From contig CM119385.1 in assembly GCA_051294905.1 (NCBI GenBank), positions 4,650,001 to 4,714,000 on the forward strand: 64,000 nt of DNA, in the 5' to 3' direction. Positions within the stretch are counted from its first letter, which is position 1, and each line of letters opens with the position of its first letter. This document shows, one piece after another, positions 1-33,922 of the stretch. The notes under the pieces were generated by a model. That model ran no database searches. It was not told the origin of the DNA and worked only from the letters and a program-made list of their open reading frames with translations. The position numbers were made by a program, and so were the translations under genes. The DNA comes from Botryllus schlosseri (lineage: Eukaryota).

Positions 1-138
1 TAGAGGTTTTGTTCTTTTGTCTTATTTCAGATACCTCTGATTATGCGTACATAATACTAATGCATATTTAATATGACTAATGCATATTTAATATGACTGA
101 ACGGACACTATATAGACAAGAAGTCAGTCGCATTTTCT

Positions 139-2972
139 TTGGCAATTTCTCTGGATGACATTCCTGGACCACATTCGACCCCAAAGCATTCAGAGATAGT
201 AAGGTCGTGGAAAAGACGTAGGAGAGCCGCGTCTGCAAAGAATATAGAGATTGTTCGATGTCTGTGGAGGAATAGCTCCGAATTCAGGGCCAATGTGATT
301 ACGTTCTTCCGCCAACATCATGAATTAAACACCGATAACTCGATCTATTTCTTCGATTGAGTCACCTGAAGTTCGTGGAGCAGAGAGAAATTCAGAGCTG
401 ACGTCGGATGTGATGCAAAAGACACCCATACAAACACCATTTTCGGACAATGATTCGAAATACGATGAAGTCATGGAACCTGTATTTTTGTTATTGCAAG
501 CGACCGTATATAATGGAGAGTTTATGGTGAAATGCAATGATTGCAAATTGTGGTTTCATCCTGCATGCGCTTTCCCATCGGACAGTAAAGAAATCACATT
601 TGATCGTAATAAATGGCGTATAACGTCTTTAGCTTGTGGACGTGGTAAAGACCATAACACCGGCAAAAAAAATCGCCGGGTTTACACTCACGCACCGCAG
701 CGCACTGAAAATCCTAATGTCGACAAGGAGTTATTTCCCCCCAAGTCTCCCAACGGTGCAGGTGTCACAGAAATGGATGGAATGGTAAATCATTCAGATG
801 ATGCTTCTCTGAATCCTAATGTCACTGAAGATGATGCCATGGAAAAAGATGGAATATTGGATTCTTCATATGATGCTTCCCTGTATCGCAATATCACCGA
901 AAATGATATCACAGAACATGATGGAATATTAAATCATTCCGATGATGCTTCTCTGAATCCTAATGTCACTGAAGATGATGCCACGGAAAAAGATGGAATA
1001 TTGCATTCTTCATATGATGCTTCCCCGAATCGCAATATCACCGAAGATGATATCACAGAAAATGGTGGAATATTAAATCAATCTGATGACGCTTCTCTAA
1101 ATCCTTACGTCACTGAAGATGATGTCACCGAAAAAGATGGAATATTGGATCCTTCATATGATACTTCCCTGAATAGTAATGTCTCTGAAGATGATATCAC
1201 AGAACAAGATGCATCTGATCATACAAAATCGTTTCCAGATTCCCGGATGACGTCGAATTCTAAACCAGTCGCGCACAGCGAAATTAATGAAGCATGGGTG
1301 AGTGATTCCGCAATCGAATCGATTGGAAGAATGACAGCGAAGATATCGGACAAGATCAAAGAACCTGATGAGGTGAACTTACGACGGTCAACTTCAATCA
1401 CCGTACAAGAATGGGAAAGGGCCATTAAAAATCGCGGCCAACATCATTTTGACAATAATTCTCCTTACAGAACGACACTTATACGGGCTCATCGGCAAGT
1501 TTATGATTCATGTGTGCCTATGATAAAAAGTAATTATTCGCGTGCTCCATACAAAGTGACAGAGATTACGACGGAATCTGAGCGATATTACGAAGGCAAT
1601 GTCATACTGTACTGCGGTCATAAAACATGTTGCGAATGTACGGTCACTATCCATGCTCAATTGTACAGTATGGTGAATTCGACGCAAATCGACTTTCTTA
1701 TAACTGGAGACAGGCATCATCGTCACGAATGCACTAAATCAAGAAGAGTTAAAGGCGAACAGCGGCTGAAACTGAAAGAGGAGCTTAATTAGAAAACCCC
1801 GACTCAAGTGCATCGAGATTTATTTGATACATTGTCAGAAAATGAACGGTTTTTTGGTTCACATACATTTGCACCCTCGACTGACGTTTTGAAAGACATC
1901 AAAAGAGATGACTGTCCAGTGGTAGAATATTCTAAAAACTTGCTATTCTGCATGTAGAAATTGGTGAAAATTTTCACGAATGAGAAGAAAACTAATTTTT
2001 TGCGTGCGTGGTCCGCGAATCCCCCAACCGTAACTATGAACAATTATGGGCAAATAAATATCTATAAAGAGCTGTGTCGCGTGGACTTCCTTTTCATCGA
2101 TGGCTCAGGTGTTGTGCGTAGCAGTAAGGGCTTTGAAAATTTTCAAATCTATGTGCTTTTAGTACGAAACCCAAGAAAGTGTCGACCGGGAATGCCGGTG
2201 GCAAGCTTTCTCACAAGCAAGCATGACACAATAACAATAGGAAACTTTCTGCGAGACTTCATACGCGATTCTTCGGGTAGAGAGCGATCCACGAAACCTC
2301 TCATCATTGTGATATACGGTAGTAAAGCCGTATGGAATGCAGTTTTGGATGCGTTTAACAGATGCTATCGCATTGTAACTGGCAATGCTGCGCAAAATGA
2401 CATGGAAAATACATTCGTAATAAATTGCTACAGTCACAGCATGAAAGCTGCATCCATCCTGTGTCGCAAGTACTACAAAAAGGCATTTGTTGCAACTGCA
2501 ATGTTTTGGATCGGTCTATTACTGTCGCAAGATATGCTATCAAAAATGGACGAGATAATGCGCCACATTTGTATTGTGTTGATTTCTCCAAAATGTACGT
2601 CATTTGTTAAGACCAGTTTTGCGTCTCTGTTATCACTGCAGAGAGAACAGGAATATCCAACTGATGCTGCTGGAATTGATGTCAGTGAGCCAATGCCACG
2701 ACGAGGATTATTTTTCTGGAATAACTCACGTCGAAAAAAAGCAAGAGTTGCAGTCTCCATTTTATACTCGATATCGCAATCTTGAGAAAGAGTGGATGTC
2801 AGCAACCGTAATTGATTCCGACCTGGAAAGTCAGTGCGACGATAACGTTTATTACTCTCCGTCATTTTACACCAAGTTCGTTGAAGTAATCGCTAGTCGA
2901 CTCGGTGTAACCTCGCGTCTTCTGCTAGGAGACTTATCAAGGCACAGTCGTCCTGAAATTCCTCCAAATCAT
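139..2972 (+). pseudogene. Mutator/NOF(Rehavkus)-like transposase, 5' part: PHD finger, acidic repeats, Zn-finger-like region, first half of DDE domain (stops and frameshifts)
   Basis: ORFs 410-1792 and 1961-2785 share one frame, separated only by two TAG stops. Motifs: MVKCNDCKLWFHPAC (PHD); C..C...H.H then RRVKGEQR; FLFIDGSG (Asp at 2099); PVASFLTSKHD; NCYSHSMK (MULE-type CxxH). After a frameshift the 2604 frame gives NVYYSPSF...SRLLLGD. Confidence 0.75.
776..1207 (+). repeat. Coding tandem repeat, 6 x 72 bp (24 aa), alternating A/B units
   Basis: Units DGxLNHSDDASLNPNVTEDDAxEK and DGILDSSYDASLxRNITExDITEx read directly in ORF 410-1792. Confidence 0.95.
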
Positions 2973-3254
2973 TGCTATTCAACCTGTGTGACGGTTCGCA
3001 CTAGTGCGAATGAAAAAAAATTCAGTGCGAATGACGAAAGTGGTGCGAATGGTGCGAATGAAAATCCGGATCAAGTGCGAATGAAAATCGTGAATAATAG
3101 TTAACTTTTCTAACGTGTAAATTCAAATAAACCTAATATTTAAGATCAGTGTAACATTTGCAGTTGTGACGCAATTGTAAAAGCTTAATACGACACACCA
3201 CTCATCGTAGCTCTCATAAGCCGTAGTGAATAAATATTCATGAACTATAATTAT

Positions 3255-3530
3255 GTTTTGTTTTGGGGTATTCATGGTGTCTGTCGACTACTATGGTCAT
3301 TTACACCAGGCCGATATTCTTCTTATTTTCCGTAACTGCCGACTTATAGCACGGCCCACCTCTAGGCTTTTTGTAAGACACCGCTGACGCGGATGAGGTG
3401 GCGAGGAGGAGCCTAGGTAAACCTCCAACACTTAGGTATCGGAATTCGGAAGTCGACCTCGGTCGGACTCGAACCCGCACCCATTGGTGTAGCAGCCGCG
3501 GATTATACCACTGCGCTATCTCGCCACAGG
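3255..3530 (-). mobile_element. tRNA-derived SINE
   Basis: Minus-strand head GGCGAGATAGCGCAGTGG (A box) ... GGTTCGAGTCC (B box); A-rich tail (ccccaaaacaaaac); perfect 14-bp TSD tgaactataattat at 3241-3254 and 3531-3544. Confidence 0.85.
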
Positions 3531-5030
3531 TGAACTATAATTATTACATAACCAAAAGCCGGGTTTCGAAGCTGGTGTAGTGACAGTATATATAGATATC
3601 TATAATCTCAATAAGTCTATGGTGGCGGACATACAGTATATCAGCCCGTCTGAGCCTGCGACAGGCTGGAAAAATGACATCAAATTGACTTTCTGCTTTC
3701 TTTCGCTAAACAATCATCATATTTTCGTCATAACTATTCGATTAGCGCGAGGCACGAGGATAGTAGTAAATACCATCATTACAGACTCACATTTGCAAGT
3801 TACTGTAAAGCAAATTTTTACCCCTTCAAGGGTTATTAAAGTATGAAGGTTATAATTTTGGGTCGACACGGTGCCAGAGCTAACTGTTAATATGTATGCG
3901 ATATTTATTGAATTTATTGCAAAGAATCTGGCGATCGTTTTTGCATATCCAAGATCACTGCGTTATGGGTAGGCCTACTGTAGCCAATAAGCGAGACACG
4001 ATAAGATTTGTCCGACTGTTTTTTCTTGAAAACATGGTCGAAGACCGTTGAGATCAACTAGTGTAGGGGTGTGCAACGAGCGAGTCCAGGCCTATGAGAC
4101 TCATTCATTTCGAGGCCAACCTCTTCTGAATCGGGGCACATGAAGACGTAAAGTTTTGGCGAACAAACCGCTGATAAAATGCGGCGCCAAAACATAAGCG
4201 GCGACATAACCTCGGTCTAAAATTGACCGATGCTGGATGACCAAACCTTTCGAGAGGGATATGCTCCGTTGTCGGCACGGAATAGTCCCGTTCTTGCAAT
4301 CTGAGTAGACAGTAGTACAACAACTGCGATACGCTGAGGAATTTATTCCGCCCTAATTTGGAATCGCGTACGTCAGACAAGTTTTGTAGAGCTGTGTTGG
4401 GTGGAATTGTGGTGTGCGCGTTCTGTATATGTCATACATGCCCGTAAAATCGTAGCATACAACAGTAATATTTAGAAAAATCGTTTTCATGGGTGCGGCT
4501 CGGGTCGCGAGATGCCACAAAAACTCAGATTTTGGTGGAGGTCTAAAAGCTGATTTACCGTTATTAAACTGTCATGAATTCTCAAGTCAGATAGAGTCGA
4601 TAGAGTAGAGTAGAACACAAAGTATCGTGAGTTATTTGCTCTTCTCATGAACTTGCGAGACAGAAGTTGGAGCAACGTATCATCAGGTAGCGAGCTCTAA
4701 TGTGCCTACTCTCCTTGATTGTTTTGCACCTTATGTTCAAAAGACATAAGGCAAAAGCCTCAACACGAACATGGCGTTTTTTTTTTCGACAAACTGGACC
4801 CTCGCGGGACCTTTGTGTCAGCTCTCAAAAACGATTTCTGCCAGCAAGCATTTTTCACTCGCGAAAAATACGCTCTATTTTGGATAGGAGTGCAGAACAG
4901 ATTATAAGACCTTGTCATCCAAGCACTAGTAGACGTTCTTGTACAAATTTCCAATCAACATTGTTTGGCCGAGAAGGGTTTTAGTGAAATAATTGAAAGC
5001 AAAACGAGTGAAAAAAGTGGTGTCCGGTCA

Positions 5031-5103
5031 ATACCGAGAATGCTATTACCGAGAAGGACAATACCGAGAATGGACATTACCGAGAATGGAGAATACCGAG
5101 AAT
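5031..5103 (+). repeat. Short tandem array of (a/t)taccgagaa motif, 5 copies at 14-16-bp spacing
   Basis: ataccgagaa tgct attaccgagaa ggac aataccgagaa tggac attaccgagaa tggag aataccgagaa seen directly. Confidence 0.85.
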
Positions 5104-5280
5104 ATTGAGACACTTGATAGCTTAAGCTACATAGTAACCAATTTGTTGCACATCTGAACAATTATTGTTAAGTAGGCCTATCTTCATCTTCTTTTTGTAT
5201 AACACTTTTCGATTAGTTTGTGCGAATGAAATTTATTTTACAAAAAAAGTGCGAACGGAGCTCAAAAAGGTTGAAAAGCA

Positions 5281-5684
5281 CTTCTCCAAATCATTACATG
5301 AAATATGCAAATTGGTGGAAACAATTGAAGAAATATCCTGGGCGCTCAATCTGCGACGGTACAATAACGCAAGGTTCAATTGAGCAATTTTTCCGGCAGT
5401 TGAAGCGAAACTATCAAAACAACAAGCGTGCATCAAATGTACCAAAGTTCGTGTGGGACTACGAAGATGCAACGAGAGTGACTGACAGATCGTTTGCTGA
5501 TGATTTAGTGAAAGTCAAGTACTGCTCGCGGCCTGTACCGAAACGGAAACTCCAAATATATCATCAAGAAGAACAACCGGTAAATAAAAAGTCAAAATTT
5601 CTAGAGACGAAATTCAAGAGACGAAGCCAAAGAGAAGGATATTACGGAACTCCCACGGCCGCCGAAAAAAATCAGGGATCGTAA
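5281..5684 (+). pseudogene. Mutator/NOF-like transposase, 3' part of DDE domain
   Basis: TITQGSIEQFFRQLKRN resembles the T-x3-E-x2-F-x2-LK motif carrying the catalytic Glu (5382-5384); in frame with the 5' part after the insertion is removed. Confidence 0.7.
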
Positions 5685-5694
5685 CTCAAAATCA

Positions 5695-6438
5695 TTGACA
5701 CCGGAGGAAAAACTCGCAGAAAAGTTATGGGAGTCGATAAAAGAACACGCCTTATCGACTGTCGGTACGAAATTGACAGACACTGCGATCAAATCGAAAT
5801 TCGAAGTCGCTGTGACGAATGCTGATATAGTGTCTGTTTGCCCCAACCCATCGGAGAAAATCATTCATAATATCAATGAAATCATGACAAATGACACTAA
5901 ACCAGGATGGCTAACAGACGGTATTGTTAATGCTTTTGTAATCCAGTGTGCGCTCAACGGAAATTCTCAGTTAAATGAAAGTCATTATGGGTATCTGACA
6001 ACGGACATGACTCATTTCATACTTTGTGGAAATAAGCCTCGAGCAGTTCCAGACACTATCCTTGATCACAATCGGCACTTACGCGAAGTCATACTTTTAC
6101 CAATTCTTATTCGTCGGGATTTCAATCATTTTGCTCTTCTCTGTTTTCAAGAAAAGAATAAAATATTCATATTTTACGATTCTTCTGGTGCCCGTGATAC
6201 GGAGGAGCAACACGAGATTTCATCGTCAATTACAGAATACCTATCTGGTATTTCTAGGATAGATATGAACAACGTGACGAAGGAATTTTGCGGCGACTTT
6301 CTTCAAACCGACTCTTCTTCTTTGCGGTGTTTGTGCATGTATGGCAGCGTGGAGCATATGTTTGCAAGAAGCACCGTACACATTTGCAAAATGAATTCCG
6401 TCATACAATCATTTGGGAGCTACGTCAAGACTGCCTGA
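5695..6438 (+). pseudogene. Ulp1/SENP-like (peptidase C48) domain of the transposon
   Basis: GWLTDGIVNAF; His in NHFALL; Asp in FYDSS; oxyanion QTDSSS followed by the Cys codon (TGC GGT, 6323) shifted by one extra T. Confidence 0.8.
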
Positions 6439-6496
6439 CATCATCCCACATTGTGCGAAATGCTGAGGTTGAATGTGGCATTATTACTCAGATATA

Positions 6497-7284
6497 CCTG
6501 GACTCGAAAATCTAGGAAATACATGCTGATTCAATTCTGTTATGCAAGCATACTCTCATGTCACACGGCCGAGATTGGGGCCACTGGATGAGAGTAGGCA
6601 AATTCACGGGGAATTCGCAAATACACTTATCTCGTTGACAAACTTGAAGGCGGTTGCAAGTGACGAATTAATGAATGCTGTTAAAATTGCATGTGAGAGA
6701 ACTAAACTAGAGTTTGGTAAGCAGCGCGATTGTCTGGAGTTCTATTCACTATCTTCCTTGCCACAAGTATTGGAAGATATTCGTTGGAAGCACGAATTGA
6801 AATACGAGCGGATCATCCACTGCAACGAATGTCAAACGAATGGAACAACAGTACACCGAGAAAAAATCTTAAAGGTGAATTGCGGAGCTGCATCGATAGC
6901 AGAAGCATTTCAGATTTCACAAATCAAATGTGAAAAATGTGATTCCGCGATAAATACTAATGTCAAGCTCACTGAAATTCCGAATCCAGTGACAGTGTGG
7001 CTCGACCGTGCGAATTCTATGGGTAAAAAGATGGAAAATACTGTCTTTGCCAACCGGAACCTCGACATTCAGGGACCTGATCAAGATTGGATCGGATATT
7101 CGCTCAAGGCTGTAGTAGTTGCACACATCGGATCGGATGGAGACGGACACAATATCGCATATTTAATTCATTCGAAATGTATGGTACGGCTTTGCAACGA
7201 AGAAATTGTATAGAATTTGTTGATTCGAACGCAGCTTTCAACGCCATGTCAAGGAATGTATACCTCTTTATTTATCTCAGAAAG
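6497..7284 (+). pseudogene. Ubiquitin-specific protease (USP/UCH, peptidase C19) domain of the transposon
   Basis: Cys box PGLENLGNTC*FNSVMQA (TGA at 6527) in frame with ORF 6542; QRDCLEF (QDxxE box); CNEC...CEKC Zn pair; His box YSLKAVVVAHIGSDGDGHNIA; terminal box SRNVYLFIYLRK after a frameshift near 7205. Confidence 0.85.
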
Positions 7285-7779
7285 ATGAAGCGAAGATTAC
7301 CGCTGCAAAACTTCTCCAAGCAAGAATATTTCATGCAAAGTCTGCCATTAGAAATGATGGATATCAATGAAGAAACTAAAGCAATCGGTGACACAATATT
7401 TCAGGACATTGTAAATATTTGTCATCTTACATTACACGATTCGCAAAAGGACGTCCGTAGTCAGCGACATTCCCTTTTTCTCGAAAACAAACACGCTGAA
7501 TTGCAGAAAATTATCGTACCTGTTGGACAAAATGACAGCGAAGAAATCAAAGTCATATTCCAATATATCAAAAACAAGACCTGCGTCTTACATGCGAGAT
7601 GGATCAGACATTTGAACACAGGAACAGAATACGTCGCATACAACACATTTTCGCGAATAATTTTCAACAAGGCTGTGGTGCATGAGGACAGTGAGCTCAT
7701 GAAGAAATTAGCACCAACGCACAGCAACGACAAGTATTTCAAGTTGGTTGTGTTGCAAGTAGTGTTTGTCCATCACTGA
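7285..7779 (+). CDS. Uninterrupted 164-aa C-terminal extension of unknown function, in frame with the USP terminal box
   Basis: Part of ORF 7087-7779, contiguous with VYLFIYLRK; no motif recognised. Confidence 0.4.
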   Translation: MKRRLPLQNFSKQEYFMQSLPLEMMDINEETKAIGDTIFQDIVNICHLTLHDSQKDVRSQRHSLFLENKHAELQKIIVPVGQNDSEEIKVIFQYIKNKTCVLHARWIRHLNTGTEYVAYNTFSRIIFNKAVVHEDSELMKKLAPTHSNDKYFKLVVLQVVFVHH

Positions 7780-8923
7780 GAAGAGAACATACGAAGAAGT
7801 TTTGGAGAATCTGAATGTAGGCCTACCATATGAATGGCGAAAAAAATTAATTACAAGTTTCGTTTCTACAGCTTTCACATCGTATTTTGAATATACTTTT
7901 TTGTTGAAGAACTATCGAATTTCATTTCATTGGTAGTTTTGTTTTGTTGGTTTACTTTTGTTCTGAAATCGCACAAGACTTTTAAATAGCATATGAAGAC
8001 CGACATTATGCAGAGATTTGCGTCACCAAATATTGTACTGAAGTCAGAGGTATAAACGCATCTCGTAATTTGCAGTGGCGAGCAATTTGCAGTCGTTAAG
8101 GCATATAAGTTGAGTCGGCATTATGAGAAAACTGCTAGTGAGATACAGACACCGGGCGAGGCTTACAGAGAGCGCGAATTTCGGATGGCTTACTAGCAAA
8201 ACCAGGTTTATTTTACCAAACTGCACAAACCTCGGAATGCAGCGACCAAAACCAAGAATAATGACCCTGGATATATAAGCCTAATATTTTTTAGTAAATT
8301 AACCTTAACTTTTCATTACCAAATATTAATACACCAGCTACAGCAGCTTGTGTTAACAATAGCATAAACTAGCTGTCTTCTTCGTCTTTAGAAAAATATT
8401 AAAAGGGTCAGATTTTATCAGAGTCGGGGCCAATTAGGGGCATATCTCGAAATAACAATAGTGCGTAAATAGGGAAATTTTGGTGGATGAACGGTAGTCA
8501 TATTATTAGTTCACACAGCTATCAAAGTATCCTGCTGTCAGTAGGGAATAACTGACATCAGATAAAAGTGATACCGACAATCATAAGTCCTCAAAATTGA
8601 GTCATCAAAAACACTCAGCATGCACTGTGCAAAAGCGTAATAATACGGAAAATTAATTATCCTATGCTATTTGTAATAGCCAGGAAGATCTGGAATCTAA
8701 AAAGAAATTTTAATGAAAGTAATTTGAAAGCTCTTTCCGATGATGTGTTAATTATCTGAATTGTAGGTGAGGTACACTCTTGAATCCGGCCTTGAATGTG
8801 GAATTTGACGTACACTGGAATTGAGGCCAAGAATGCCCGACAGCGCAATGTAACGTAACTTTGGTCCTCGTGTTCGTAATTAAGCAGGACGATCTGGAAT
8901 CTAAAAATGGATTTGAATTAAAG

Positions 8924-9075
8924 TCAGCCTCGAATTTTTCGTTGTTATGGAGATTGGCATTGGGACGCAACAATGCTCTCTGGCTCTTTTTCTCTTGAGC
9001 TACTCTCTCGTTTCGCCAGACAGCATTGTTGCGTCCCAATGCCAATCTCCATAAAAATGAAGAATTCGAGGCTGA
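8924..9075. other. Long hairpin: 61-bp arms, 30-nt loop
   Basis: 8924-8984 is the reverse complement of 9015-9075 at 57/61 positions. Confidence 0.9.
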
Positions 9076-9638
9076 TTGTGGGAGTTCCAGGGCCACGAGC
9101 TGAATAAAATTTATATTTTCGTAATCAGTGCAGAGTCAGCTTTCGATTGATACCCGTTTTACCAAATTTAATGCTCGGCAAGCCGGTCAAAAATGACTGT
9201 CAAATTGCCTGTAGCCAAATGGAAATTGTGACGTTATGCAATTTCACTGAGGCGTGAGATTTGCCTGTGTCGACACCATAAAGGACACTATGGTATAACG
9301 CATACTCCGTTTTTGAGGTTTTTCTTTATCGTTACGCTTCATCTAAACTTGCATTGTACTTGGTTCACTGTGTTTATATAGCTCAATGGTCCTACAGGGT
9401 TGGTTCGATTATGTTCACAATAAGAGCAATTCTGTTCACAATAAGAGCAGTCTCATGTTCACAATAAGAGCAGTCATGTTCACAATAAGAGCAGTCTCAT
9501 GTTCACAATAAGAGCAGTCGTTGTATTCACAATTAAATCAGTCGCAGCACCACCATATCCCCCTGACACCATGTCCGAGTGGCAACATAGTCCGAACACA
9601 ACCCAGACATGATGTCCGAACACCCCCAGACACGATGT

Positions 9639-10032
9639 TATGGGAAGGTGTGACGTCTGATAACCTGCTAAAGTTGTGACCTGAGTCCAACGTAATGTGT
9701 GGCTGGGTAGATATACTTAGCTCTTTTCGTAGCAGACGCACGTCTCTGCGTTTAGTCCTTGTTGATCTGACAACTTCAACGTGAATGCAACGACAGGATT
9801 GCCTCAGATAGATATATTGGTCGAATATGCATGGAATATATACAGTAGGATATCGCAGATGAGTCTAGCTTGTAAAATGAGATGCACGAGCTGATAAATG
9901 GCAAGTCACGTGGTAGCGAGAAGAAAGATATAAGTCACGTGATATACAGATATGGGCGATGTTCCGATGTACCATAATGATGTTGTATCTTACAAAGTGT
10001 ATGAACCGTGAGAGGGCGCAGGGCGTCCCACA
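9639..10032 (-). repeat. 3' LTR
   Basis: Direct repeat of 14131-14524; on the minus strand it is preceded by the polypurine-like tract at 10033-10044. Confidence 0.92.
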
Positions 10033-13000
10033 TCGCCTCCTGCTAAAAAGGCGTGATTATAGCGACAATACAAAATGAAATTTACATGCATTGAATAGCA
10101 GTACAATTACGAAACGTAATAATTGCAACGGATATCACATAGTGTGTGGTTTAACGTGGTAAGACCGAAGTGTGTAGTTAATAAAGTATTGGTAGAAAGG
10201 CGATAACACCAATTTAAAATGCAATATTGTAGCCTGATGTTGCAATATTTATACAACATGATAGCAATGAAACCATATATGAGATAGTGTATTGATAACA
10301 CGTTAAGGGTTAGATTAAATCTAGTCAAAATGGCGAATTGGTCATATCTGAGGCAATTTTTGTGTTTTATTAAAAGAACAATAAACGAAAGAAGAAAAAA
10401 ATATGTACACAAAGGAATTGACATTAGGTCTGGCGAATGCGTCATACGCTAGAACAAATTGGTGGTAACTCGAAAATGAGTGTATGTTATTTGTACATGC
10501 AAAATCCTATAAGCGGAATGTAGTGTATGGTTTGGGAGCATATTAAAGTCAAAACTACTTTTGAAAGTAATCGAAACACGTGGTATAGGAAGTAACGAAA
10601 GTAGGAAACTGGTGTCTGGGTTTTCTAGCGACCAGAGACTGCTTTTATGAGTCAATGGAGTTGAATAGAAAAAATTACTCAAATGATGATCTGGTAGTCG
10701 AACCGCTTAAAATGGCGAGATTTGTGGGAAATTTCCTGAACCATTAAGATTAACGACCATTGAAATAGTCACAAAGACCGGGGCCCGAAATTATGCGAGC
10801 CGTATATATTTTCGGCAAGAACAGTCGTATTGACGCATTCGCTAATGGGTAGCCTATACGAATGAATCTTGAAATGCTAATAAGTCCGCGTGGGAGAGAT
10901 AGATAAAAGTCATGAATCATAATCGAGTCTATAGGGATTACGAAATTCGCCGCGTTTGAAAAGTGAACAGTCCATCAGTCTTTTGGAAGACCGAATAATT
11001 ATTTATATACAGATAAGCCATGCACCGGGGGCCGCGAACCTGCCTGGAATAATTAACAGTCAATGCTCATAGCTCATTAAGGGTTGTATTTAGATCCAAT
11101 TAGTTCACTCCGCCAAGGTTAAAACGCGTATCGCCTGCTGTGCGAATATTCTTCACGACTGTTCAAGTCGGCTTTAAAATGCGTATAATACGTGGTTTTA
11201 CCAAAGCGCCATACGGAACTTGAAATTCCCGTAATGTCTGATAGGGCGGCGTCGGCTTAGCAGAGGTTGTTGTGTAGTAGAGAGCATTTCGGCGGTTCGC
11301 GATAGACCCGTGGCAGGCGACGACGAATTCTAGAATGCATTATAAGCAATATCGGCAGCAAGATGATATTTCACAAGGTGGTAATTAGCATAATATCATA
11401 GCAATAATGGCGATGACAAATTGAAAGAAAGTAAAATACAAAAACACATCGTTCGTCAGTGAACCAGATATGAGGTGGTGAAAATCTGCACCGATAGGGA
11501 GTATACGCTATAATGTGAGCGTAAGTACTAAGTATTGAATCGATTCCATACGTGACGGAGCGACGCAAGGCGGTTATATAAGCCTTGTGAGTAATTGGAG
11601 CTTTCAAGTAGAAGTTAATAAAAATTTACGGAATCTCGAAGTGAAAGGAAATAATGCCGGGTTATTCGGGTGTTTTGATCAGCTCAAAAGTATAGTAATG
11701 GAATATTCGCATCAAAGCATGTCAAGATGAATGTAATCGTAGCGTAACGCTGGGACTTCGTCATAAATAACGAAGTAACGTCGTGAAAGTAGAATGTACA
11801 AAATGTAAAGAGAGGTAATAACAATAGCTTAAGTAATGACAAATGTGTGTATTGTTAGGTAGCCTAATGGCATTGTTAGTGTTTAGTGCTGCGAACCGCA
11901 GTCATGTCGAAAAAAAAAGTCCCTAGCGATGTACATTGTACACAGCATGGTATACCACAAATCCATACACATTGATGAATCTGCGCGCCATATGCTATCC
12001 AGATATATAAAAAGGTTTCCGGAAATAAATTGACGTGATTTAATCAAGAATTTGGTCCACTAACGGATCGAAAGAAGGGATAAAAATAGTAATTAATCAT
12101 CACTGCACGCCACTTAACATATCGCAAGTGTGAGAACGTGCGCCCGCTACTTCAATAATGTGCTTCGAAGACTTACACATGGCAATGCCTAATGACGTAT
12201 CGACCGGTAAGATACATCTAAAAAAACAGTAAGTATTAGGTCAAATTCCCTAATACCGGATAAATAATTCATCCAACCGTATATACACTAATAGTGTCCG
12301 ATCGTGGATCATTTCGAAAAAAAAGCGTACGGGCGAGACGCGAGTCGACCGAATTTCACCTCAACTTCGTTATGTAATGATGGAAGCTTATAGCATGAGT
12401 TAAAATCGCATGTTTACAACCCATAGATTCCCCGGCCGGTAGAATCGCTGAGTCACGCACAAGCAATTCCCATGTCTAAAAACGATTTGGCGAGATAACA
12501 TGGCCAAACCCACTCATTACACACGATCCTAGGAGCAAAAGTGAAATCGTAGACCCGGTACTTCGACCATAACCTTAGTTAACGAGTTCCCCGTGTAGCG
12601 ATAATATGGGCAACGTGATATTGAAAATTTAACAGATTCGTGACTATACAAACGTGTCACGGATAGGTGACAAGATGTCAGTAATAGGTAGCCATGCCAT
12701 GAAATGTACAATGTATAAAGGTAAAAGATACGTATAGCTAATCGCATGTAACTATAGGTTGCAAAATCTGAGTATGTTCAGATGACATTATCGCGGGTAA
12801 GTATATAAGGACGTAAATTACGGGAAAAAAATGACAATTTGTCACCGTGTTAAAGCGGCCTTATTTAAGTATAGGTAATTAGAAGTAAGCGAAAATGTCA
12901 AAGACCTAGTATAAAGAAAGTAAGGAAGTCAATGTTTGAAGAAAATAGGGAAGTAACTTCCGTATTTATAAATTCCAGCAAAGCGCTGAGTGAGAAGTAA

Positions 13001-14112
13001 CGCTAATATGTGATTAAAATCGAATTATGATTATGGGTAATTGCAGCAAAAGCGAGGTTATGCGAATACGTGTAGTGAGATAAGATGAAGTTGCGTTATG
13101 CAGAGTTAAGTTAGTTATAAAATCCCCATTCCCAGTGAAACTGGTATATTTCAATAATTCAAAGCCGAAATCTAAATTGTCGGTTAAAAATAGCAGAATT
13201 TGCCGCGGAACATCATATAGAATCCCGATGGAATTCTATGCTATAGTCCGGCGAAAAGCCGTGTCAATATTTTTATCGAAGTAACATTGACGGTATAGTT
13301 ACGGTGGTTAAAAAGGGTAGCGCTTAAATACGCGCGGAAGTCAATGTCGCATGAATGACATATGAAATCACAAAAATTAATATCCTGAAATTGGTAATTA
13401 TGTTCCACGGAGATGCCGTGAATTAAAAAAACGAGCAAGAAAATAGATTGGTAAATTTCCACTGTGGTTGGCAGTGATTTACGCGGTAATATGAAGGTAG
13501 GAAAAACCGCAAAATTTATAATCAGAATCGAAATGGGGGTGTTAAACAATAAAACAACTGTAAGCAAATGGTATGTTACACGACTAAGGTAGGCTATTCG
13601 TGCGAAAGTGAAGTTGTATATATGGAAATAGTGAATAGTGAATCGGTAGTAATTATTCGATTTCACGGGAGAGAGAAGCAATTTTACCGGGCGATCGAGA
13701 GTGTAATTCCCGACGAGGAATGGATGTGATAATTTCGTTAGAAAGCAAAACGCTAAGATTCAAATAATAGTTTTTAAGGCCGTAATATAAAAACGAAACC
13801 AATGCACAATGTTCTGTCAGTGTCAGAGTATCACTCAAATCTGGTTCTCTGAATGTCATGGCGATGAATATAGGAACACAAACAACGAACATAATTATAT
13901 GGAAAGCACGAATCGAGCAATAGCGAGGAAATTTGCTGCTAGCCGATAAAGCCAAGTGAGATAAATCATTCTCGCTGCAAAATGCATTCCCGAAATTCGA
14001 AGTCAAGTAAACGGATTTACCGTGTAAGGGTGGAAAAGTCCTGGATGGCTCCATAGCAGTTGTTAGTCCAATTGTGTAGGAGGCGATTCGTCCTTCGTTG
14101 AAGCTTAAATCA

Positions 14113-14130
14113 TCTCACGAGCGTGCACCA
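14113..14130 (-). promoter_or_regulatory. Primer-binding site (tRNA not assigned)
   Basis: TGG-starting 18-mer immediately after the 5' LTR. Confidence 0.6.
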
Positions 14131-14524
14131 TATGGGAAGGTGTGACGTCTGATAACCTGCTAAAGTTGTGACCTGAGTCCCACGTAATGTGTGGCTGGGT
14201 GGATATACTTAGCTCTTTTCGTAGCAGACGCACGTCCCGGCGTTTAGTCCTTGTTGATCTGACAACTTCAACGTGAATGCAACGACAGGATTGCCTCAGA
14301 TAGATATATTGGTCGAATATGCATGGAATATATACAGTAGGATATCGCAGATGAGTCTAGCTTGTAAAATGAGATGCACGAGCTGATAAATGGCAAGTCA
14401 CGTGGTAGCGAGAAGAAAGATATAAGTCACGTGATATACAGATATGGGCGATGTTCCGATGTACCATAATGATGTTGTATCTTACAAAGTGTATGAACCG
14501 TGAGAGGGCGCAGGGCGTCCCACA
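14131..14524 (-). repeat. 5' LTR
   Basis: Termini TGTGGG...CCCATA on the minus strand; 390/394 identical to the 3' LTR. Confidence 0.92.
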
Positions 14525-15106
14525 ATGTCCTAGTGTCAACGCAGTTCGAACACACTCCTGACATGATGCCCGAACACCCCTAGACACGATGTCCGAATGT
14601 CAACGCAGTCCGAACACATCCCAGACACGATGTCCGAACGCCCCCCCCCCAGACACACCCCAGACATGAGGTCCGAACACCCCCCAGACATCCTCCATAC
14701 ACGATGTCCGAACTCACCACGCCCCAGACATGATGTCTGAGTGTCAACGCAGTCCGAACACACCCCAGACACGATGTCCTAACGCCCCTTCCCCAGACAC
14801 ACCCCAGACATGATGACCGAATACCCCCCAGACATCGTCCAGACACGATGTCCGAGCTCGCCACGCCCCAGACATGATTTCCGAGTGTCAACGCAGTCCG
14901 AAGACACCCCAAACATGATTTTATGAACACACCCTAGACTTGAAATTTGAACACAGGCCGGGACATGATGTCCGAACATCATTTCCGATTGGCAACGCAG
15001 TGTGGACACACCTCAGTCATGATATCCAAACACCCCCAGACATGATGTCCAGAGTGTCAATGCAGTCCGAAGATACCCCAGACATGATAATACAATAAGA
15101 TCAGCC

Positions 15107-15995
15107 ATGTTCACAATAAGAGCAGTCTCATGTTCAGAATAAGAGCAGTCATGTTCACAATAAGAACAGTCCTATGTTCACAATAAGAGCAGTCATGTTC
15201 ACAATAAGAACAGTCTCATGTTCACAATAAGAGCAGTCATGTTCACAATAAGAGCAGTCTCATGTTCACAATAAGAGCAGTCATGTTCACAATAAGAACA
15301 GTCTCATGTTCACAATAAGAGCAGTCATGTTCACAATAAGAACAGTCTCATGTTCACAATAAGAACAGTCTCATGTTCACAATAAGAGCAGTCGTTGTAT
15401 TCACAATAATATCAGTCGCAGCACCACCATATCCCCCGGACACGATGTCCGAGTGGCAACATAGTCCGAACACCACCCAGACACGATGTCCGAGTGTCAA
15501 CGCAGTCCGAACACACTCCTGACACGATGCCCGAACACCCCCAAACACGATGTACGTACGTAAAGCAGTGTGGCAACGCAGTGTGGACACACCTCAGTCA
15601 TGATATCCAAACACCCCCAGACATGATGTCCAGAGTGTCAATGCAGTCCGAAGATACCCCAGACATGATAATACAATAAGATCAGCCATGTTCACAATAA
15701 GAGCAGTCTCATGTTCACAATAAGAGCAGTCGTGTTCACAATGAGAACAGTCTTATGTTCACAATAAGAGCAGTCATGTTCACAATAAGAACAGTCTCAT
15801 GTTCACAATAAGAGCAGTCATGTTCACAATAAGAGCAGTCTCATGTTCACAATAAGAGCAGTCATGTTCACAATAAGAACAGTCTCATGTTCACAATGGG
15901 AGCAGTCATGTTCACAATAAGAACAGTCTCATGTTCACAATAAGAGCAGTCATGTTCACAATAAGAACAGTCTCATGTTCACAATAAGAGCAGTC
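15107..15995 (+). repeat. Two minisatellite arrays of atgttcacaataaga(g/a)cagtc(tc), 18/20-bp units, within a ~0.6-kb tandem duplication
   Basis: Arrays at 15107-15393 and 15688-15995; shorter copies at 9411-9519 and inverted at ~16700-16809. Confidence 0.95.
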
Positions 15996-17754
15996 GTTGT
16001 ATTCACAATAATATCAGTCGCAGCACCACCATATCCCCCGGACACGATGTCCGAGTGGCAACATAGTCCGAACACCACCCAGACATGATGTCCGAACACC
16101 CCCAGACACGATGTCCGAGTGTCAACGCAGTCCGAACACACTCCTGACACGATGCCCGAACACCCCCAAACACGATGTACGTACGTAAAGTAGGTGCGTA
16201 CAGGTACAGCGACCCAGTCGAGACCGATAGATTGATGACTCGAAGTTGACTCAAAAAAATTAGCTTTGAGTCACGAGTCAATTTACATTTTGAGACACAG
16301 AGTCAAGTTAAGTCGTGTCTGGGGGGGGGGTTCGGACATCGTGTCTGGGGTGTGATCGGACTGCGTTGACACTCGGACATCATGTCTGGGGCGTGGTGAG
16401 TTCGGACATCGTGTATGGATGAGGATGTCTGGGGGGTGTTCGGACATCATGTCTGGGGGGGGGGGCGTTCGGACATCGTGTCTGGGGTGTGTTCGGACGG
16501 CGTTGACACTCGGACATCGTGTCTGGGGGTGTTCGGGCATCATGTCAGGAGTGTGTTCGAACTGCGTTGAGACTCGGACATCGTGTCTGGGGGTGTTCGG
16601 ACATCATGTCTGGGTTGCGTTCGGACTATGTTGCCACTCGGACATCGTGTCCGGGGGATATGGTGGTGCTGCGACTGATGTTATTGTGAATAATACAACG
16701 ACTGCTCTTATTGTGAACATGAGACTGCTCTTATTGTGAACATGACTGCTCTTATTGTGAACATGAGACTGCTCTTATTGTGAACAGAATTGCTCTTATT
16801 GTGAACATAATCGAACCAACCCTACTCCAATGGTCAAGACAGTCAAGAAACTGCTGAAACCGTAAAATATAGCTGGGCACTATTATCTAATTGATTTAAC
16901 GATTAAATAGGTGAGATGAACAGAACATGGATAACATTTTTCAGCATACACAACTGCTTTCTGCCTGTTCAGAACAGATCCGGAAGAAACCGGTTGACGA
17001 TTCGAACATCTGTTTGTTTATCTAAACAAATTGCATAATAAGTTCCATAATGGTGTGTGTCTTGGGTTGAAGCTCTCTTAGCTCTGGAGGTTTTATGTCT
17101 TATCTTATGTTGTGTATATGGTGGATCGTACTGTTTGGTATCCGTATGAAGCAGGCAAAAACCTAGAACATATGTTGTATATGACATAGATAAGTCGTTG
17201 GGACAGTCCTTGCCTTGACGAGTTTAGCATTGCTGCTGCACCAGTATGGAATCGGTGTCCAAGGCACGCAGGATCACGCCGACTTGGTCGCCAGTTGCAC
17301 GCGATCACGCCGTCACGGGTCGTTGATTTCATTAAAAAAATAAAATTAAAAAAAAAAAATTTGAAAAAAAGTCAATTTTCTCAGCCACCTCAAATGCTAT
17401 ATTCCCGTTAGTATGTGGTATATAATGTTTTGACCTAATCCTCTAGCCAGGATCTGTTGATTACTGTCTGTTGGTAAAGTATTTGCACCTTGCCAGTGCT
17501 AAAGGACAGAGATTCCAATCAGGCTGCTGCAGTTTCACACGAGATGTCCAAGGCCCAAGGGATAGTATTCAGCTTATTTAGTCGTAACGTAACGTATAAC
17601 TCATATCAAACGTATATTTTACAATTTTTATGGAATGCTTCATGACTGTTCAAGAGTTATCCCCTACTGTAATAGTGTAATTCACAATTTTCATTCTGAA
17701 AATGTTCAGATATAATATGGGTGAAGACATAATCGTTAGTAAAAATTGCAAAGC

Positions 17755-19905
17755 ATGATGATACAAATGCTTCGAATATCGCCTTGCCTACAAACTGGAC
17801 GACAACTGGCCAGTACGAGTACAAGAAACCATGTTTTCACACGGATAAAGATACAGGACTGGCATTTCCACTCTCTTGCCCAACATAAATTTGCTCAAAG
17901 CACAGTCGTCGGGTTGAGATATTTCCATGTCACGCCGGTGGTTCAGAGCGATCAACATCAATCCAAAAAAGAAAATAGTCCCAATGACAAACTCCCATTC
18001 TTCTTTGGACTTGGCCTGTCGGCTTTCATCTCATACATGCTGTACATTACATTCACTGATGGAGGATCCAGTGACTCTCCTTTCAAATTTTCAATGTCTT
18101 TCAAAGATTTTGTGGAAGAGGTGTTACCAACTGGTGAAGTGGTAGCGTTGAATATGAATTCATATTCAGGAGGGCACAAAGCCCGTGCTATGCTTCGACG
18201 TGGGGCTTCTTTCAAGGGTAATTCTTACCCTATTCCTGTTTTGATCGAAATAACCGACATCAAAAATGCAAAAGAGTTTGAGAGGATCATTCGTAATGCG
18301 GAAAAAGCAATGGGACTCAGTCCGACTGAAGGAATACCAATCAGACATCAACTTGTGAGTACCGGTGATGCGTTCGCTGCGGTGGGATTACTATTGGCAA
18401 CTGTGACATTGGTGATATTGTTAATATCACGTGCGCAATCTGTTATGCGCAGTTCAGGCGGAATGACGTCTGTTGGTAAGCTAACGCCAAGTAGTAACAT
18501 AAAGAAAGTCCAAACTGGCATCAAATTCACAGATGTGGCAGGTTGTTCTGAAGCGAAACAAGAGGTAATGGAATTCGTCCACTATTTAAAGCATCCTGAA
18601 AAATACCAAAAACTAGGCGCTAAAATGCCGAGAGGCTGTCTTCTCACAGGCCCACCCGGTGTCGGTAAAACCTTACTAGCGAAAGCAGTTGCTAGTGAGG
18701 CAGAAGTCCCGTTCATATCAAAGGCCGGTTCTGACTTTGTTGAAATGATTGGTGGGCTCGGTGCCAAAAGAGTACGTGAGCTGTTTAAAGAAGCACGCTC
18801 GGTAGCGCCGTGCATTGTGTACATTGATGAATTAGATGCTGTCGGTGCGAAACGGTCTTCCGATAATTCTCAAATGTCAGGCGCCTCTGAACGAGATCAA
18901 ACTTTGAATCAAATTCTAGTGGAAATGGACGGTATTTTGAGTACGGCTCATGATGTAATTGTTATGGCGTCGACGAATCGTGTTGATATGTTAGATAAAG
19001 CTCTTTTGAGACCCGGTCGATTCGACAGGCATATTTCAATCGATTTACCGACTAAAATTGAAAGAAAAGACATTTTTGAGATACACATGAACAAACTGAA
19101 ATTGAAAGATCCACACTCTCCCTACTCTGATCGCTTAGCGGATTTATCTCCAGGCATGAGTGGCGCCGACATCGCTAATATCTGTAATGAAGCCGCGATT
19201 TGTGCAGCCCGAGATAAAGACACTCACATCGACGCCAGTCACTTCGAACAAGCCTTCGAACGAGTGCTGGGCGGATCCAAGAAAAAATCATCCGCCCTTT
19301 CCCCGGACGAGCGAAAAATAGTTTCGGTTCACGAAGCCGGGCATACTCTCGTCGGTTGGATGCTAAAGTACACGGACACGCTCGTTAAAGTTTCGATAGT
19401 CCCGAGGACCAAGTCTGCGTTGGGTTTTAGCAGGACGTTACAGCGCGAAACGAAAATGTACACAAGTCGGATTTTGATGGAAATCATGGCAACGAGATTG
19501 GCGGGAAGGTCGGCCGAGAATCTAGTCTTCGGTACGGTGACGCACGGGGCCGAAGACGACTTGAAAAAAGTCACGGACATGGCATATATGAAAGTGAAGG
19601 AGTTTGGACTCAATCCTGTTGTCGGAAATTTATCGTTTTCAAAAGACGAGGAAGAGATAACGAAGCCGTACAGCGACTCGCTGGCGCAAGAGATCGATAT
19701 TCAAGTCAAAAATACCGTAATCGAAGCTCACCAAATTGCGCACGACATACTAGTTGCTAACCGATCGAAATTAGATATATTATCCAAAGAACTGCTTGAG
19801 AAAGAAGTGTTGAACTACGACGATATCAAAAATCTTATTGGCCCCCCTCCATACAGTAATCATGGTGATAAAATTATGGATGATGTTCCCAATTTGAATA
19901 CTTGA
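17755..19905 (+). CDS. SPG7: Paraplegin, mitochondrial m-AAA protease subunit (single-exon CDS, 716 aa)
   Basis: N-terminal transit-like region and two TM segments; Walker A GPPGVGKT; Walker B IVYIDELD; SRH ALLRPGRFDR; M41 HEAGH and GAEDD. GGLGAKRVRELFKEAR..APCIVYIDE and HEAGHTLVGW match paraplegin better than AFG3L2. First ATG at 17755 (the ORF-track start 17746 is TTG). Confidence 0.9.
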   Translation: MMIQMLRISPCLQTGRQLASTSTRNHVFTRIKIQDWHFHSLAQHKFAQSTVVGLRYFHVTPVVQSDQHQSKKENSPNDKLPFFFGLGLSAFISYMLYITFTDGGSSDSPFKFSMSFKDFVEEVLPTGEVVALNMNSYSGGHKARAMLRRGASFKGNSYPIPVLIEITDIKNAKEFERIIRNAEKAMGLSPTEGIPIRHQLVSTGDAFAAVGLLLATVTLVILLISRAQSVMRSSGGMTSVGKLTPSSNIKKVQTGIKFTDVAGCSEAKQEVMEFVHYLKHPEKYQKLGAKMPRGCLLTGPPGVGKTLLAKAVASEAEVPFISKAGSDFVEMIGGLGAKRVRELFKEARSVAPCIVYIDELDAVGAKRSSDNSQMSGASERDQTLNQILVEMDGILSTAHDVIVMASTNRVDMLDKALLRPGRFDRHISIDLPTKIERKDIFEIHMNKLKLKDPHSPYSDRLADLSPGMSGADIANICNEAAICAARDKDTHIDASHFEQAFERVLGGSKKKSSALSPDERKIVSVHEAGHTLVGWMLKYTDTLVKVSIVPRTKSALGFSRTLQRETKMYTSRILMEIMATRLAGRSAENLVFGTVTHGAEDDLKKVTDMAYMKVKEFGLNPVVGNLSFSKDEEEITKPYSDSLAQEIDIQVKNTVIEAHQIAHDILVANRSKLDILSKELLEKEVLNYDDIKNLIGPPPYSNHGDKIMDDVPNLNT

Positions 19906-22948: not shown

Positions 22949-23469
22949 CTTTTGTAAACCTCAAGTGGTGGTGACGCATCATACGAAATACATAGCACAA
23001 AGTCAAGCACTATGTTGAAAATGGCGTATCTGAGAAGTCATGAACAGCTCACAATCACAAAGTGCAATGGAATGGATTTGGTCAAAAAAATACTTAATAA
23101 TCTTGAATGTGATATCGGACTGGCATTATATCCTTTGTGATCGCATAAAAATGTACATCTTTCAACTTTCCACATCATTCGTACTGCTGTAATGTCATAA
23201 CGAGTGATACTCGAATGCTCAGATTCTCGATTCAGACGTTGGTCAATTGATACGCACAGGCAGGTGCAATGAGGTAGTAGCATTACCAGAGACAACAGTA
23301 ATATGAACATTTAACATGACACTTTGATCAAGCTCCGCGGATGCAGGCGAGCGTGATTTCATTCAGCCTTGATCATCTGATGTAGGCTTTTGAGAAGGAT
23401 ACCATCATTTGTTACGTCCACAGTGTAGCCTAATCTTTTCCCGTTGAGCTTAAAAACACTGTTCTGCTT

Positions 23470-32734: not shown

Positions 32735-33692
32735 TAGGGATGGTGTGAACCTCTGAAAGGTTCAGGTTCGTGTGAACGCGAACCTTTTTGAAAGGTTCTG
32801 TGTGAACGCGAACGTGAACCTCGTGACGTCACGTGACGTCATATTGCTAATTCCAACCCTATCTTTCAATGAAGTGATAGCCTATATTAATGTACACGAT
32901 ACCTAGCGACGACGGGGGTCACATAATGCCATAATGCTAAAGTACATTTTGGCGATTTAAACGTCGCTAAATGTATCAACTGGGGCAATCATATGATATA
33001 ATACTCCTAATATCATCCGTGGCTTTGCCAATAACTTTGAAGAGGTGTTGCCAGGGAATATAAGCTAACGCCTTAGCGGTCTTGACCAGACCATGTAATG
33101 TATTCGTGTATGAGTATTGCTACATTGGTATTGGGCAGAGTGTAATACAGGTTTTTATACTTGCTACCGATATTAGGCTACCCCAAAACTTATACAGCTG
33201 TAGCCAACACCTCAATCGCACGTATTTGGTTTTAATGATACAGTAAACATATGAAGTGAAGATAGACCCCGTACGCTAGCTAGATTTGTTACATCAAAAA
33301 ACGATATCAATCTCATTGATTGGTTGAATCGCTATCTACATGTTATGTATGTCGCTCGTGATGTTATGTGATTGCGCGTCAGCTCACAGCAGAGAGTCAC
33401 TATATATTCACAAACGGAAAGTTGGATATTTAGAGCAAAATCTTTGAGATTGTCAAAGTGGATGCTCGTTTTGAGTTGTTTTTTTTATGCTGCCGGCGTC
33501 ATTCATAGAGTGGCCCGCAGTTGAAATGCAATAAATTCGAACCAAGGATGTCATCATGAAGTGAAAATTGTAATATATGAAAAAGGTTCACAGTGCAGAA
33601 CCTACCAATGTTCTGTTGTGAACGCGAACCTCCAAATTCCCGAGGTTCACACACAGAACGCGAACGTGAACCTCGCGTTCACACCATCCCTA
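32735..33692. mobile_element. hAT-type MITE
   Basis: TIR tagggatggtgtgaac / gttcacaccatcccta; perfect TSD atatttat (32727-32734, 33693-33700). Confidence 0.9.
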
Positions 33693-33780
33693 ATATTTAT
33701 CACAGTTTTGTTCAGTTTCGTGCCCTCAACTACAACTAGAAAAAACAGGATGATTTCTTCAGATCTAACAAAAGAAAATA

Positions 33781-33922
33781 TATTAGAGGATGAAGCGGAA
33801 AGCTATTTCACAGCAAAGAGTCATAGCATGGACTGTGATATTTTGAGTTACTGGAGAACAGAAAATCGTTTTCCCCATCTCAGGGCTGCTGCTGCTCGAG
33901 AACTCGTATGCATGACGGCAAC
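33781..33922 (+). pseudogene. hAT transposase C-terminal dimerisation-domain fragment
   Basis: EAESYF...DILSYWRTENRFPHL...ARELVCMTAT matches the D.L.WW....FP.L...AR..L..PAT pattern. Confidence 0.7.

Follow-up and report, generated by a model that had tools for sequence, protein, structure and literature searches.

A dead Foldback-type transposon copy in Botryllus schlosseri and metagenomic relatives that join a PHD finger, a DDE transposase core and two cysteine protease domains in one protein

Results

A giant transposon remnant at the start of the window

We analyzed a stretch of 64,000 nucleotides from Botryllus schlosseri (GenBank assembly GCA_051294905.1, contig CM119385.1, positions 4,650,001 to 4,714,000 of the forward strand), here called the window. 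With a probability that we put at about 0.85, the plus strand of this window from 329 to 7779 is a dead, 5'-incomplete copy of an autonomous cut-and-paste DNA transposon of the Foldback type. In the family to which it belongs, a PHD finger, a zinc finger, a DDE transposase core, a C48 (Ulp1/SENP) protease domain and a C19 (USP) protease domain are parts of one protein of ~2,000 residues, and near-intact relatives indicate that this fusion is the normal family design. Members of the family are multi-copy and have long inverted arms made of tandem repeats, in line with the giant DNA transposon remnant that an earlier analysis of this locus (the original prediction) had proposed.

The window has no runs of N and a G+C content of ~40%. 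Three-frame translation of positions 1-8400, combined with a listing of open reading frames (ORFs), revealed that open pieces follow one another on the plus strand from 329 to 7779 and encode, in this order, a PHD finger, acidic tandem repeats, a Cys/His-rich domain, the DDE core, the C48 domain, the USP domain and a C-terminal tail. The same pieces had been predicted in the same order, and they were recovered by translation, Pfam, profile matches and tblastn. When intact relatives (see below) were used as tblastn queries, homology extended from ~422 to 7776 and was found nowhere else in the window on either strand. The predicted start at position 139 is not supported, since homology begins only at ~422. 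The 5' end of the element lies outside the window. The nearest relative of the window copy, P0002, comes from a 927-bp Logan contig and is 58% identical.

The PHD finger remnant (464-688, frame 2) was recognized by Pfam (PHD, 23.2 bits, slightly below the cut-off of 24), by alignment and by profile matches in the PDB; its first Cys pair is lost and the C..C-W-H..C core is retained. It is followed by in-frame acidic tandem repeats (763-1211) with units of 72/144 bp, detected by Tandem Repeats Finder and self-BLAST, and then by a Cys/His-rich domain with a linker motif (1367-1954), both conserved in alignments across lineages. Stop codons at 1790-1792 and 1955-1957 follow the Cys/His domain proper (1367-1789) and the conserved linker (1793-1954), respectively. 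Alignments and tblastn with intact relatives delimited an N-terminal part of the DDE core (1958-2973), for which a structure model and fold search were also available, and a C-terminal part (5296-5681, frame 3). The first catalytic Asp is encoded at 2099-2101, the second is replaced by Tyr at 2315-2317 and is followed by a nine-residue deletion, and the Glu is encoded at 5382-5384. In the window copy, the C-terminal part also encodes a basic patch that resembles a nuclear localization signal. The N-terminal part retains the CxxH motif and the conserved Trp, and inside it the frame shifts from 2 to 3 between 2650 and 2700.

The two parts of the core are separated by a non-coding insertion of ~2.3 kb (2974-5295). 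Its edges are marked by two identical copies of a 12-nt sequence in direct orientation (2962-2973 = 5284-5295) and by 19-nt imperfect inverted ends (2973-2991 and 5262-5280), its removal restores the reading frame, and the protein segments on either side of it are adjacent in four relatives (L002, L003, L007 and L009). This agrees with the single nested insertion that had been predicted. No Pfam match was obtained for ORFs of the insertion, which also contains a 16-nt tandem repeat at 5029-5103.

The C48 domain (about 5740 to 6391) was assigned by its match to SENP8, by the family profile, by its frame-2 translation and by tblastn. It keeps all four catalytic residues, with His (6127-6129), Asp (6178-6180) and Gln (6304-6306) in frame 1 and Cys (6323-6325) in frame 2, so that the frameshift near 6315-6323 falls between Gln and Cys. 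The USP domain (6500 to about 7290) was identified by Pfam (UCH, 30.3 bits against a cut-off of 23.9, at 6542-7213), by a profile match to USP36 and by its translations. Its Cys box at 6500-6526 reads G-L-E-N-L-G-N-T-C, with the Cys at 6524-6526, and is directly followed by a TGA (6527-6529) at a position where relatives have Trp. A QQD-like motif, a zinc ribbon and a His box (His at 7148-7150) are also present, and near 7205 the domain shifts from frame 2 to frame 1, in which the terminal strand motif is found. The conserved C-terminal domain, or tail (about 7291 to 7779), ends at a stop codon at 7777-7779. Six in-frame stops (1790, 1955, 6392, 6461, 6467 and 6527), four frameshifts (near 2650-2700, 5672-5704, 6315-6323 and 7205), the substitution of the second Asp by Tyr and the loss of the first PHD Cys pair confirm that the copy is dead. 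An Rfam scan of the window gave no match.

Relatives carry all domains on single open reading frames

A phmmer search with the USP piece of the window against 1.84 billion proteins returned one weak match, P0001, and the contig that encodes it (L001) was found to carry the whole series in the order of the window. Profile searches and contig look-ups from L001 onward led to further loci, and the identical domain order is now seen in 13 loci from eight public metagenome samples. L002, L004 and L005 come from the same sample as L001, L003 from a second European Nucleotide Archive (ENA) sample, L007 and L008 from two further ENA samples, L009-L014 from Joint Genome Institute (JGI) metagenomes, and L015 from the sample that it shares with L007. 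By tblastn, the window pieces were found in one order in L001, L002, L003, L004, L005, L007 and L008, and the proteins of L007 and L008 mapped in the family order in L009-L014 and L015.

The original prediction had depended on bridging stops and frameshifts in one locus, so that adjacency of the pieces in the window was its sole link between them; unbroken ORFs of the relatives now span the transposase-C48, C48-USP and USP-tail junctions. P0013 is one ORF of 1,963 amino acids that runs unbroken from the PHD finger through the greater part of the USP domain. With the two ORFs of L007 it shares 97% and 90% identity, and the frameshift that separates these two is therefore a private lesion of L007. 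Both L007 (7669-10728; 1,019 amino acids) and L008 (12706-15729; 1,007 amino acids) have a single ORF with the Glu motif of the transposase, the C48 domain, the full USP domain and the tail. In L009, the reading frame at 3818-8095 is open for at least 1,426 amino acids, until it runs off the end of the locus, and it encodes the PHD finger, the Cys/His domain, all three catalytic residues of the core and the start of the C48 domain. In L001, a single ORF includes the Cys motif of the C48 domain as well as the Cys box of the USP domain. Protease segments detached from the transposase, which would have spoken for a separate adjacent pseudogene, were not found in the other copies.

The protease end of the protein appears to have been maintained. 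Both protease catalytic sets are kept across lineages that share only 25-50% identity, and the ratio of nonsynonymous to synonymous changes (dN/dS) between diverged copies, roughly estimated from Nei-Gojobori counts, was 0.37-0.40 in the USP domain and tail and 0.32-0.56 in the transposase part (approximate Fisher test, p 2e-4 to 1e-3). Values below 1 in the USP domain and tail suggest that this end evolved under constraint like the rest of the protein. Word-index searches with the transposase piece and with profiles retrieved family members only, none of them named or annotated by Pfam, and a scan of viral contigs gave no match.

Long inverted arms and multiple copies

Long-read contigs that cover both ends allowed the termini to be judged. 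In the joined L006/L002 copy, a left arm (6535-8636) and a right arm (22338-24919), 2.1 and 2.6 kb of 207-bp units with ~96% identity, enclose an element of 18.4 kb. The L007 element measures 14.3 kb, with a left arm of 3.9 kb (997-4904) and a right arm of 3.0 kb (12296-15291) built from a unit of ~207 bp. At L008 the left arm consists of at least 10 kb of 617-bp units, and the right arm is cut by the end of the locus. A coding region placed between kilobase-long inverted arms of tandem repeats identifies these as Foldback-type elements of 14-18 kb or more.

Copies of one sample share 86-96% DNA identity, and protein clusters formed at 90% identity have 29 and 44 members, which lie on different contigs. 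Most copies are broken, some of them (in one sample) by nested hAT-like or reverse-transcriptase insertions. Two such insertions on the minus strand of L001 (3409-5570 and 7113-8421) comprise one hAT-like sequence (DUF4371 / FAM200-ZBED5 RNase-like) and one RVT_1 fragment.

As a separate observation, the long ORF opens inside the arms, its first 19-41 codons being part of the arm repeat unit (L007, 4850-4904; L015, 19546-21969). The innermost left-arm repeat is thus where the reading frame starts, and the right arm encodes this peptide in reverse along its length.

The transposase core

The core of the protein is best read as a DDE transposase. Across eight lineages, the alignment shows in order the motifs Y-F-D-A-T-G-S (first Asp), I-D-G-S-x-A-x-W-N (second Asp), N-C-x-S-H, W-I, L-G-D-L-S-R-H and, for the Glu, N-N-x-T-Q-G-x-I-E-Q-x-F-x-x-L-K, which is followed by a basic patch resembling a nuclear localization signal. 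The distance from the second Asp to the CxxH is 46 residues, and both the CxxH and the Trp of the W-I motif are invariant in all eight lineages; the second Asp and the Glu are ~260 residues apart, and the catalytic D-D-E residues are retained in the better copies.

With a shallow alignment, AlphaFold gave an unusable model (predicted local distance difference test, pLDDT, of 42). Addition of further lineages raised this value to 74.5 (predicted template modelling score, pTM, of 0.77) for L009:6266-7642, and the resulting model has an RNase H-like DDE layout. In this model Asp49 ends strand 1 (45-49), Asp123 ends strand 4 (119-123), the CxxH follows strand 5 and the Glu motif lies in a helix, an arrangement that corresponds to the canonical RNase H-like layout (PMC5499845). 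When the model was compared with the PDB by Foldseek, the top 28 matches were all DDE transposases or recombinases. The best probability (0.96-0.98) was that of ISCth4, and the P element transposase (probability 0.84-0.91, with the top template-modelling score, TM-score, of 0.32), Hermes, RAG1 and Transib were also matched.

Accessory domains

The family profile of the PHD finger matched 58 sequences in the PDB, nearly all of them PHD fingers (best E 8e-9). The leading matches were Spp1, DIDO1, BPTF, PHF2/8 and TAF3, whose PHD fingers are readers of histone H3 trimethylated at lysine 4 (H3K4me3). Single sequences scored 17.7-23.2 bits with Pfam PHD, just below the cut-off of 24, the highest value being that of the window. 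The acidic repeats behind this finger form a lineage-specific linker, as relatives have other repeats or none at this place. Lineage-specific in-frame peptide repeats, to which the acidic repeats of the window are alike in kind and not in sequence, were also noted in L007 at 8200-8500 (ORF2 residues ~180-290), between the Glu motif and the C48 domain.

The Cys/His domain (C..C, C.H..CC.C, H...C) and its linker have 24 invariant columns across six lineages and matched nothing in the PDB or Pfam; the domain is presumed to bind DNA. For the C48 domain, the window piece alone matched human SENP8 in the PDB (E 2.6e-4), and all 14 PDB matches of the family profile at E up to 0.1 were SENP1, SENP2, SENP8 or Ulp1 (best 6e-4). 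Its Asp, Gln and Cys are invariant columns and its His is kept, the complete set being present in L001, L007, L008 and P0013. Single-sequence Pfam searches reached E 0.02-0.04 for C48 in relatives and gave no match for the window pieces.

The USP domain is complete in the family, as had been predicted, with a Cys box, a QQD motif, a four-Cys zinc ribbon and a His box. Relatives score 49-70 bits over the full Pfam UCH profile (63-70 bits for full-length matches), and the family profile matched USP36 in the PDB with E 3.6e-13. The tail had been regarded as an orphan; its counterparts are the C-terminal ends of L001, L007 and L008, with which it can be aligned, and no PDB or Pfam match to it was found. 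In none of the members scanned did Pfam detect a ubiquitin- or SUMO-like domain, and no conserved LRGG-type motif or Gly-Gly junction was seen in the alignments.

Discussion

Several observations weigh against the reading of the window copy as the remnant of a Foldback-type element with a DDE transposase. Neither terminal arm is seen for this copy, whose left end is off the window, and within positions 1-10000 of the window no inverted repeat brackets the coding region. No fully intact copy was seen among the relatives, P0013 being interrupted before the USP His box. A target-site duplication, which in MULEs measures 8-10 bp, was looked for and not found in the L006/L002 copy, and the candidate in L007 is an exact 8-mer at unequal offsets, 2 and 7, outside the repeat ends, with a chance probability of 0.046; the Foldback element Tm1 has a few non-inverted terminal bases (PMC3169594). 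Pfam found no significant transposase family in the window pieces or in 13 aligned members. Its best match to MULE (PF10551), in L007 ORF1 only, reached 14.8 bits against a cut-off of 27.6 (E 0.041), and its weak match to ZSWIM1-3_RNaseH-like (E 0.036, one member) is Mutator-type like the former. Sequence profiles of the core matched nothing in the PDB, so that the DDE assignment of the original prediction gained no support from sequence profiles, whereas the structure model and Foldseek supported it, the latter with E-values of only ~2e-3 and TM-scores of 0.2-0.3. Lastly, the substrates of the proteases and their role in transposition are proposals.

Which superfamily the transposase belongs to is a narrower question. 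It is most likely a divergent member of the group of Mutator-like elements (MULEs) and IS256-related enzymes, a placement that we favor on balance, with "Mutator-like", the term of the original prediction, as the best guess. We lean this way because of the (C/D)(2)H motif, the Foldback ends, the possible 8-9-bp target duplication and the top Foldseek probability of ISCth4, an IS256-family enzyme. The IS256 family is the bacterial kin of MULEs. A smaller but appreciable chance remains with a transposase from another superfamily (P/Galileo, hAT, Kolobok or Zisupton/KDZ) or from one of its own. The insignificant Pfam MULE score, which is where the Mutator-like claim fell short, is in keeping with this, as is the ~260-residue distance between second Asp and Glu, which exceeds the spacing typical of MULEs. 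Hermes and RAG1 were matched by Foldseek, and the P element had the top TM-score, so that a relationship to the P superfamily remains at the level of the fold, and the Foldback structure occurs in that superfamily too (PMC4079207, PMC3169594). MULE and hAT transposases both have a (C/D)(2)H motif, 15-45 residues downstream of the second Asp, and a Trp upstream of the Glu (PMC5499845), and these features therefore do not separate the two. Against this stand the absence of THAP, P-element, hAT-dimerization, KDZ or CxC Pfam matches in any member scanned (E up to 0.1-10 for KDZ and CxC), the Mutator type of the sole weak Pfam transposase matches and the top Foldseek probability of ISCth4. Zisupton had been considered for its zinc finger and SUMO protease, and was set aside for lack of KDZ and CxC domains in the members scanned.

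The domains around the core suggest how the protein might work. The Cys/His domain would bind the repeated units of the arms, as has been described for the subterminal repeats of the Foldback MULE Muta1 (PMC5499845), and the DDE core, an RNase H-like fold with a helical insertion domain, would cut and paste the element. The PHD finger, closest to H3K4me3 readers, could anchor the protein in active chromatin. Acting in trans, the two proteases might strip SUMO-like and ubiquitin-like modifiers from host chromatin, from factors of silencing or repair, or from the transposase, and such removal of modifiers at the site of action would favor expression or transposition. SUMO and ubiquitin are central to transposon silencing and to the signaling of double-strand breaks. 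We entertain, as a tentative idea that may well prove wrong, that this giant Foldback lineage carries a chromatin-targeted counter-defense, in which an H3K4me3-reading PHD finger would bring a transposase-fused deSUMOylase and deubiquitinase to erase the SUMO and ubiquitin marks needed for transposon silencing and DNA-break signaling in animals.

The original prediction had offered self-processing next to anti-silencing. Self-processing seems less probable than anti-silencing, as the protein showed no ubiquitin- or SUMO-like domain. More specifically, the targets of the proteases might lie not in the host but in a polyprotein of the element itself, which they would cut into a transposase and accessory proteins, a possibility that we judge improbable. 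Both are endopeptidases fused downstream of the transposase, and viral polyproteins are processed by embedded cysteine proteases in just this manner; the cut made by C48 and USP enzymes, however, falls behind the Gly-Gly that ends a folded ubiquitin-like domain, and neither such a domain nor a conserved LRGG-type motif was found among the members examined by Pfam and alignment.

Still less probable, and given very little weight by us, is that the sequences are not mobile and represent a host gene family in multiple copies, or a domesticated transposase, whose products act as chromatin proteases. The dN/dS below 1 speaks for such genes, and PHD, C48 and USP domains are typical of chromatin regulators. 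Host genes of this kind do not account for a coding region that lies between long inverted arms of ~96% identity, for tens of copies per genome that are mostly broken by stops and nested insertions, or for the D-D-E residues retained in the better copies. Finally, that the C48 and USP pieces are remnants of one or two host genes beside a transposase pseudogene, the collinear protein being an artefact of stitching, might have been suspected from the different frames of the window pieces, the stops between them and the single weak relative of the USP piece among the proteins searched, but this is refuted by the recurrence of the order in the 13 loci and by the junction-crossing single ORFs of L007, L008, L009 and L015, and is virtually without credit.

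A mobile Foldback element with a fused transposase is best compared with the Foldback MULEs, namely Drosophila FB/FB-NOF, Muta1 of Aedes, Tm1 of Meloidogyne and some Phantom elements. Like the present family, these have long inverted repeats composed of tandem subterminal repeats on both sides of a single transposase gene, whose product has a zinc-binding domain at the N-terminus ahead of a DDE core with (C/D)(2)H, and an 8-9-bp target duplication with a few non-inverted terminal bases, as in Tm1, is possible in the present family (PMC3169594, PMC5499845, PMC4079207). The present protein differs in being three to four times longer and in adding the PHD finger, the C48 and USP domains and the conserved tail, and it has no Pfam match to MULE or FLYWCH. 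No protein named NOF was among the matches of our general family searches, in which the NOF sequence itself was not compared. Rehavkus, a MULE-related group of Repbase, is alike in that its transposase protein includes a PHD finger, in having repeats close to its ends and in its animal hosts (PMC6446971). As described, Rehavkus has a single ORF, lacks proteases and carries a minisatellite ahead of the 3' inverted repeat. ISCth4 (PDB 6xg8 and 6xgx) shares the RNase H-like DDE fold with a helical insertion, and differs as a bacterial protein of ~400 residues with ~10% identity, TM-scores of 0.22-0.33 and no accessory domains.

Transposons are known to acquire accessory enzymes: Ulp1 occurs in plant MULEs and in CACTA elements, Helitron-like elements carry OTU and UCH, and TET/JBP is found in elements of fungi. 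Some of these enzymes have been proposed to blunt silencing by the host. Plant KI-MULEs/Kaonashi and Zisupton are also among the carriers of C48. In C48-bearing transposons (KI-MULE, CACTA, Zisupton) the protease mostly has an ORF of its own or is not accompanied by any other accessory domain, and none has been reported with a tandem USP; KDZ and CxC domains were not found in the present family. For CACTA cut-and-paste elements, a C48 protease has been documented (PMC8978399). In the HELIANO survey, Helitron-like elements were found to carry UCH, OTU and Peptidase_C48 stably and at fixed positions (PMC11417382), and a transposon-borne USP is therefore not unprecedented. Those elements are rolling-circle transposons with a Rep-helicase and not DDE elements, and a C48-USP tandem on one protein is not described there (PMC11417382). 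The novelty claimed for the architecture thus holds in part: our search of the literature, which did not extend to the Repbase and Dfam catalogues, turned up neither a DDE transposase with a USP nor a C48-USP tandem, whereas UCH domains were known from Helitron-like elements.

What sets the present family apart is that two different proteases for ubiquitin-like modifiers and a histone reader are fused to the transposase itself. Should host factors be the substrates of the proteases, the family would lend itself naturally to the study of how silencing and break signaling depend on SUMO and ubiquitin, and an anti-silencing function at the protein level, if true, has not been described for any DDE transposon. 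For Foldback-type elements, of whose transposases little is known, the family also supplies a well-defined autonomous partner. As Pfam misses the transposase core, such elements are probably under-annotated.

Other features of the window

A separate Foldback-like element occupies positions 9392-16827. Its two terminal inverted repeats (9396-9527 and 16692-16823) show 100% identity over 132 nt and are made up of 23/44-nt and 23/64-nt tandem units, and an exact 8-mer, CAATGGTC, is found four bases outside each end (chance ~0.01). The interior of 4.9 kb is non-coding, and extra internal copies of the left-arm modules lie at 14521-16202. This element starts 1.6 kb past the coding remnant, which equals the spacing of the right arm in relatives. 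Its 23-nt unit is absent from positions 1-9395 of the window, and a tie to the dead copy is therefore unproven. Between the coding remnant and this element, at 8924-9075, lies an inverted repeat of 61 nt that is 93% complementary and has a 30-nt loop.

Further downstream, an intron-free ORF on the plus strand (17746-19905) encodes an FtsH/YME1-like AAA protease of 719 amino acids (Pfam AAA and Peptidase_M41), and an intron-free ORF on the minus strand (23470-25512) encodes 680 amino acids with a HAUS6 N-terminal domain. These two could be retrocopies or truly intronless genes. An ORF on the plus strand at 33561-34031, with a weak match to the hAT C-terminal dimerization domain (E 0.063), is possibly another transposon remnant.

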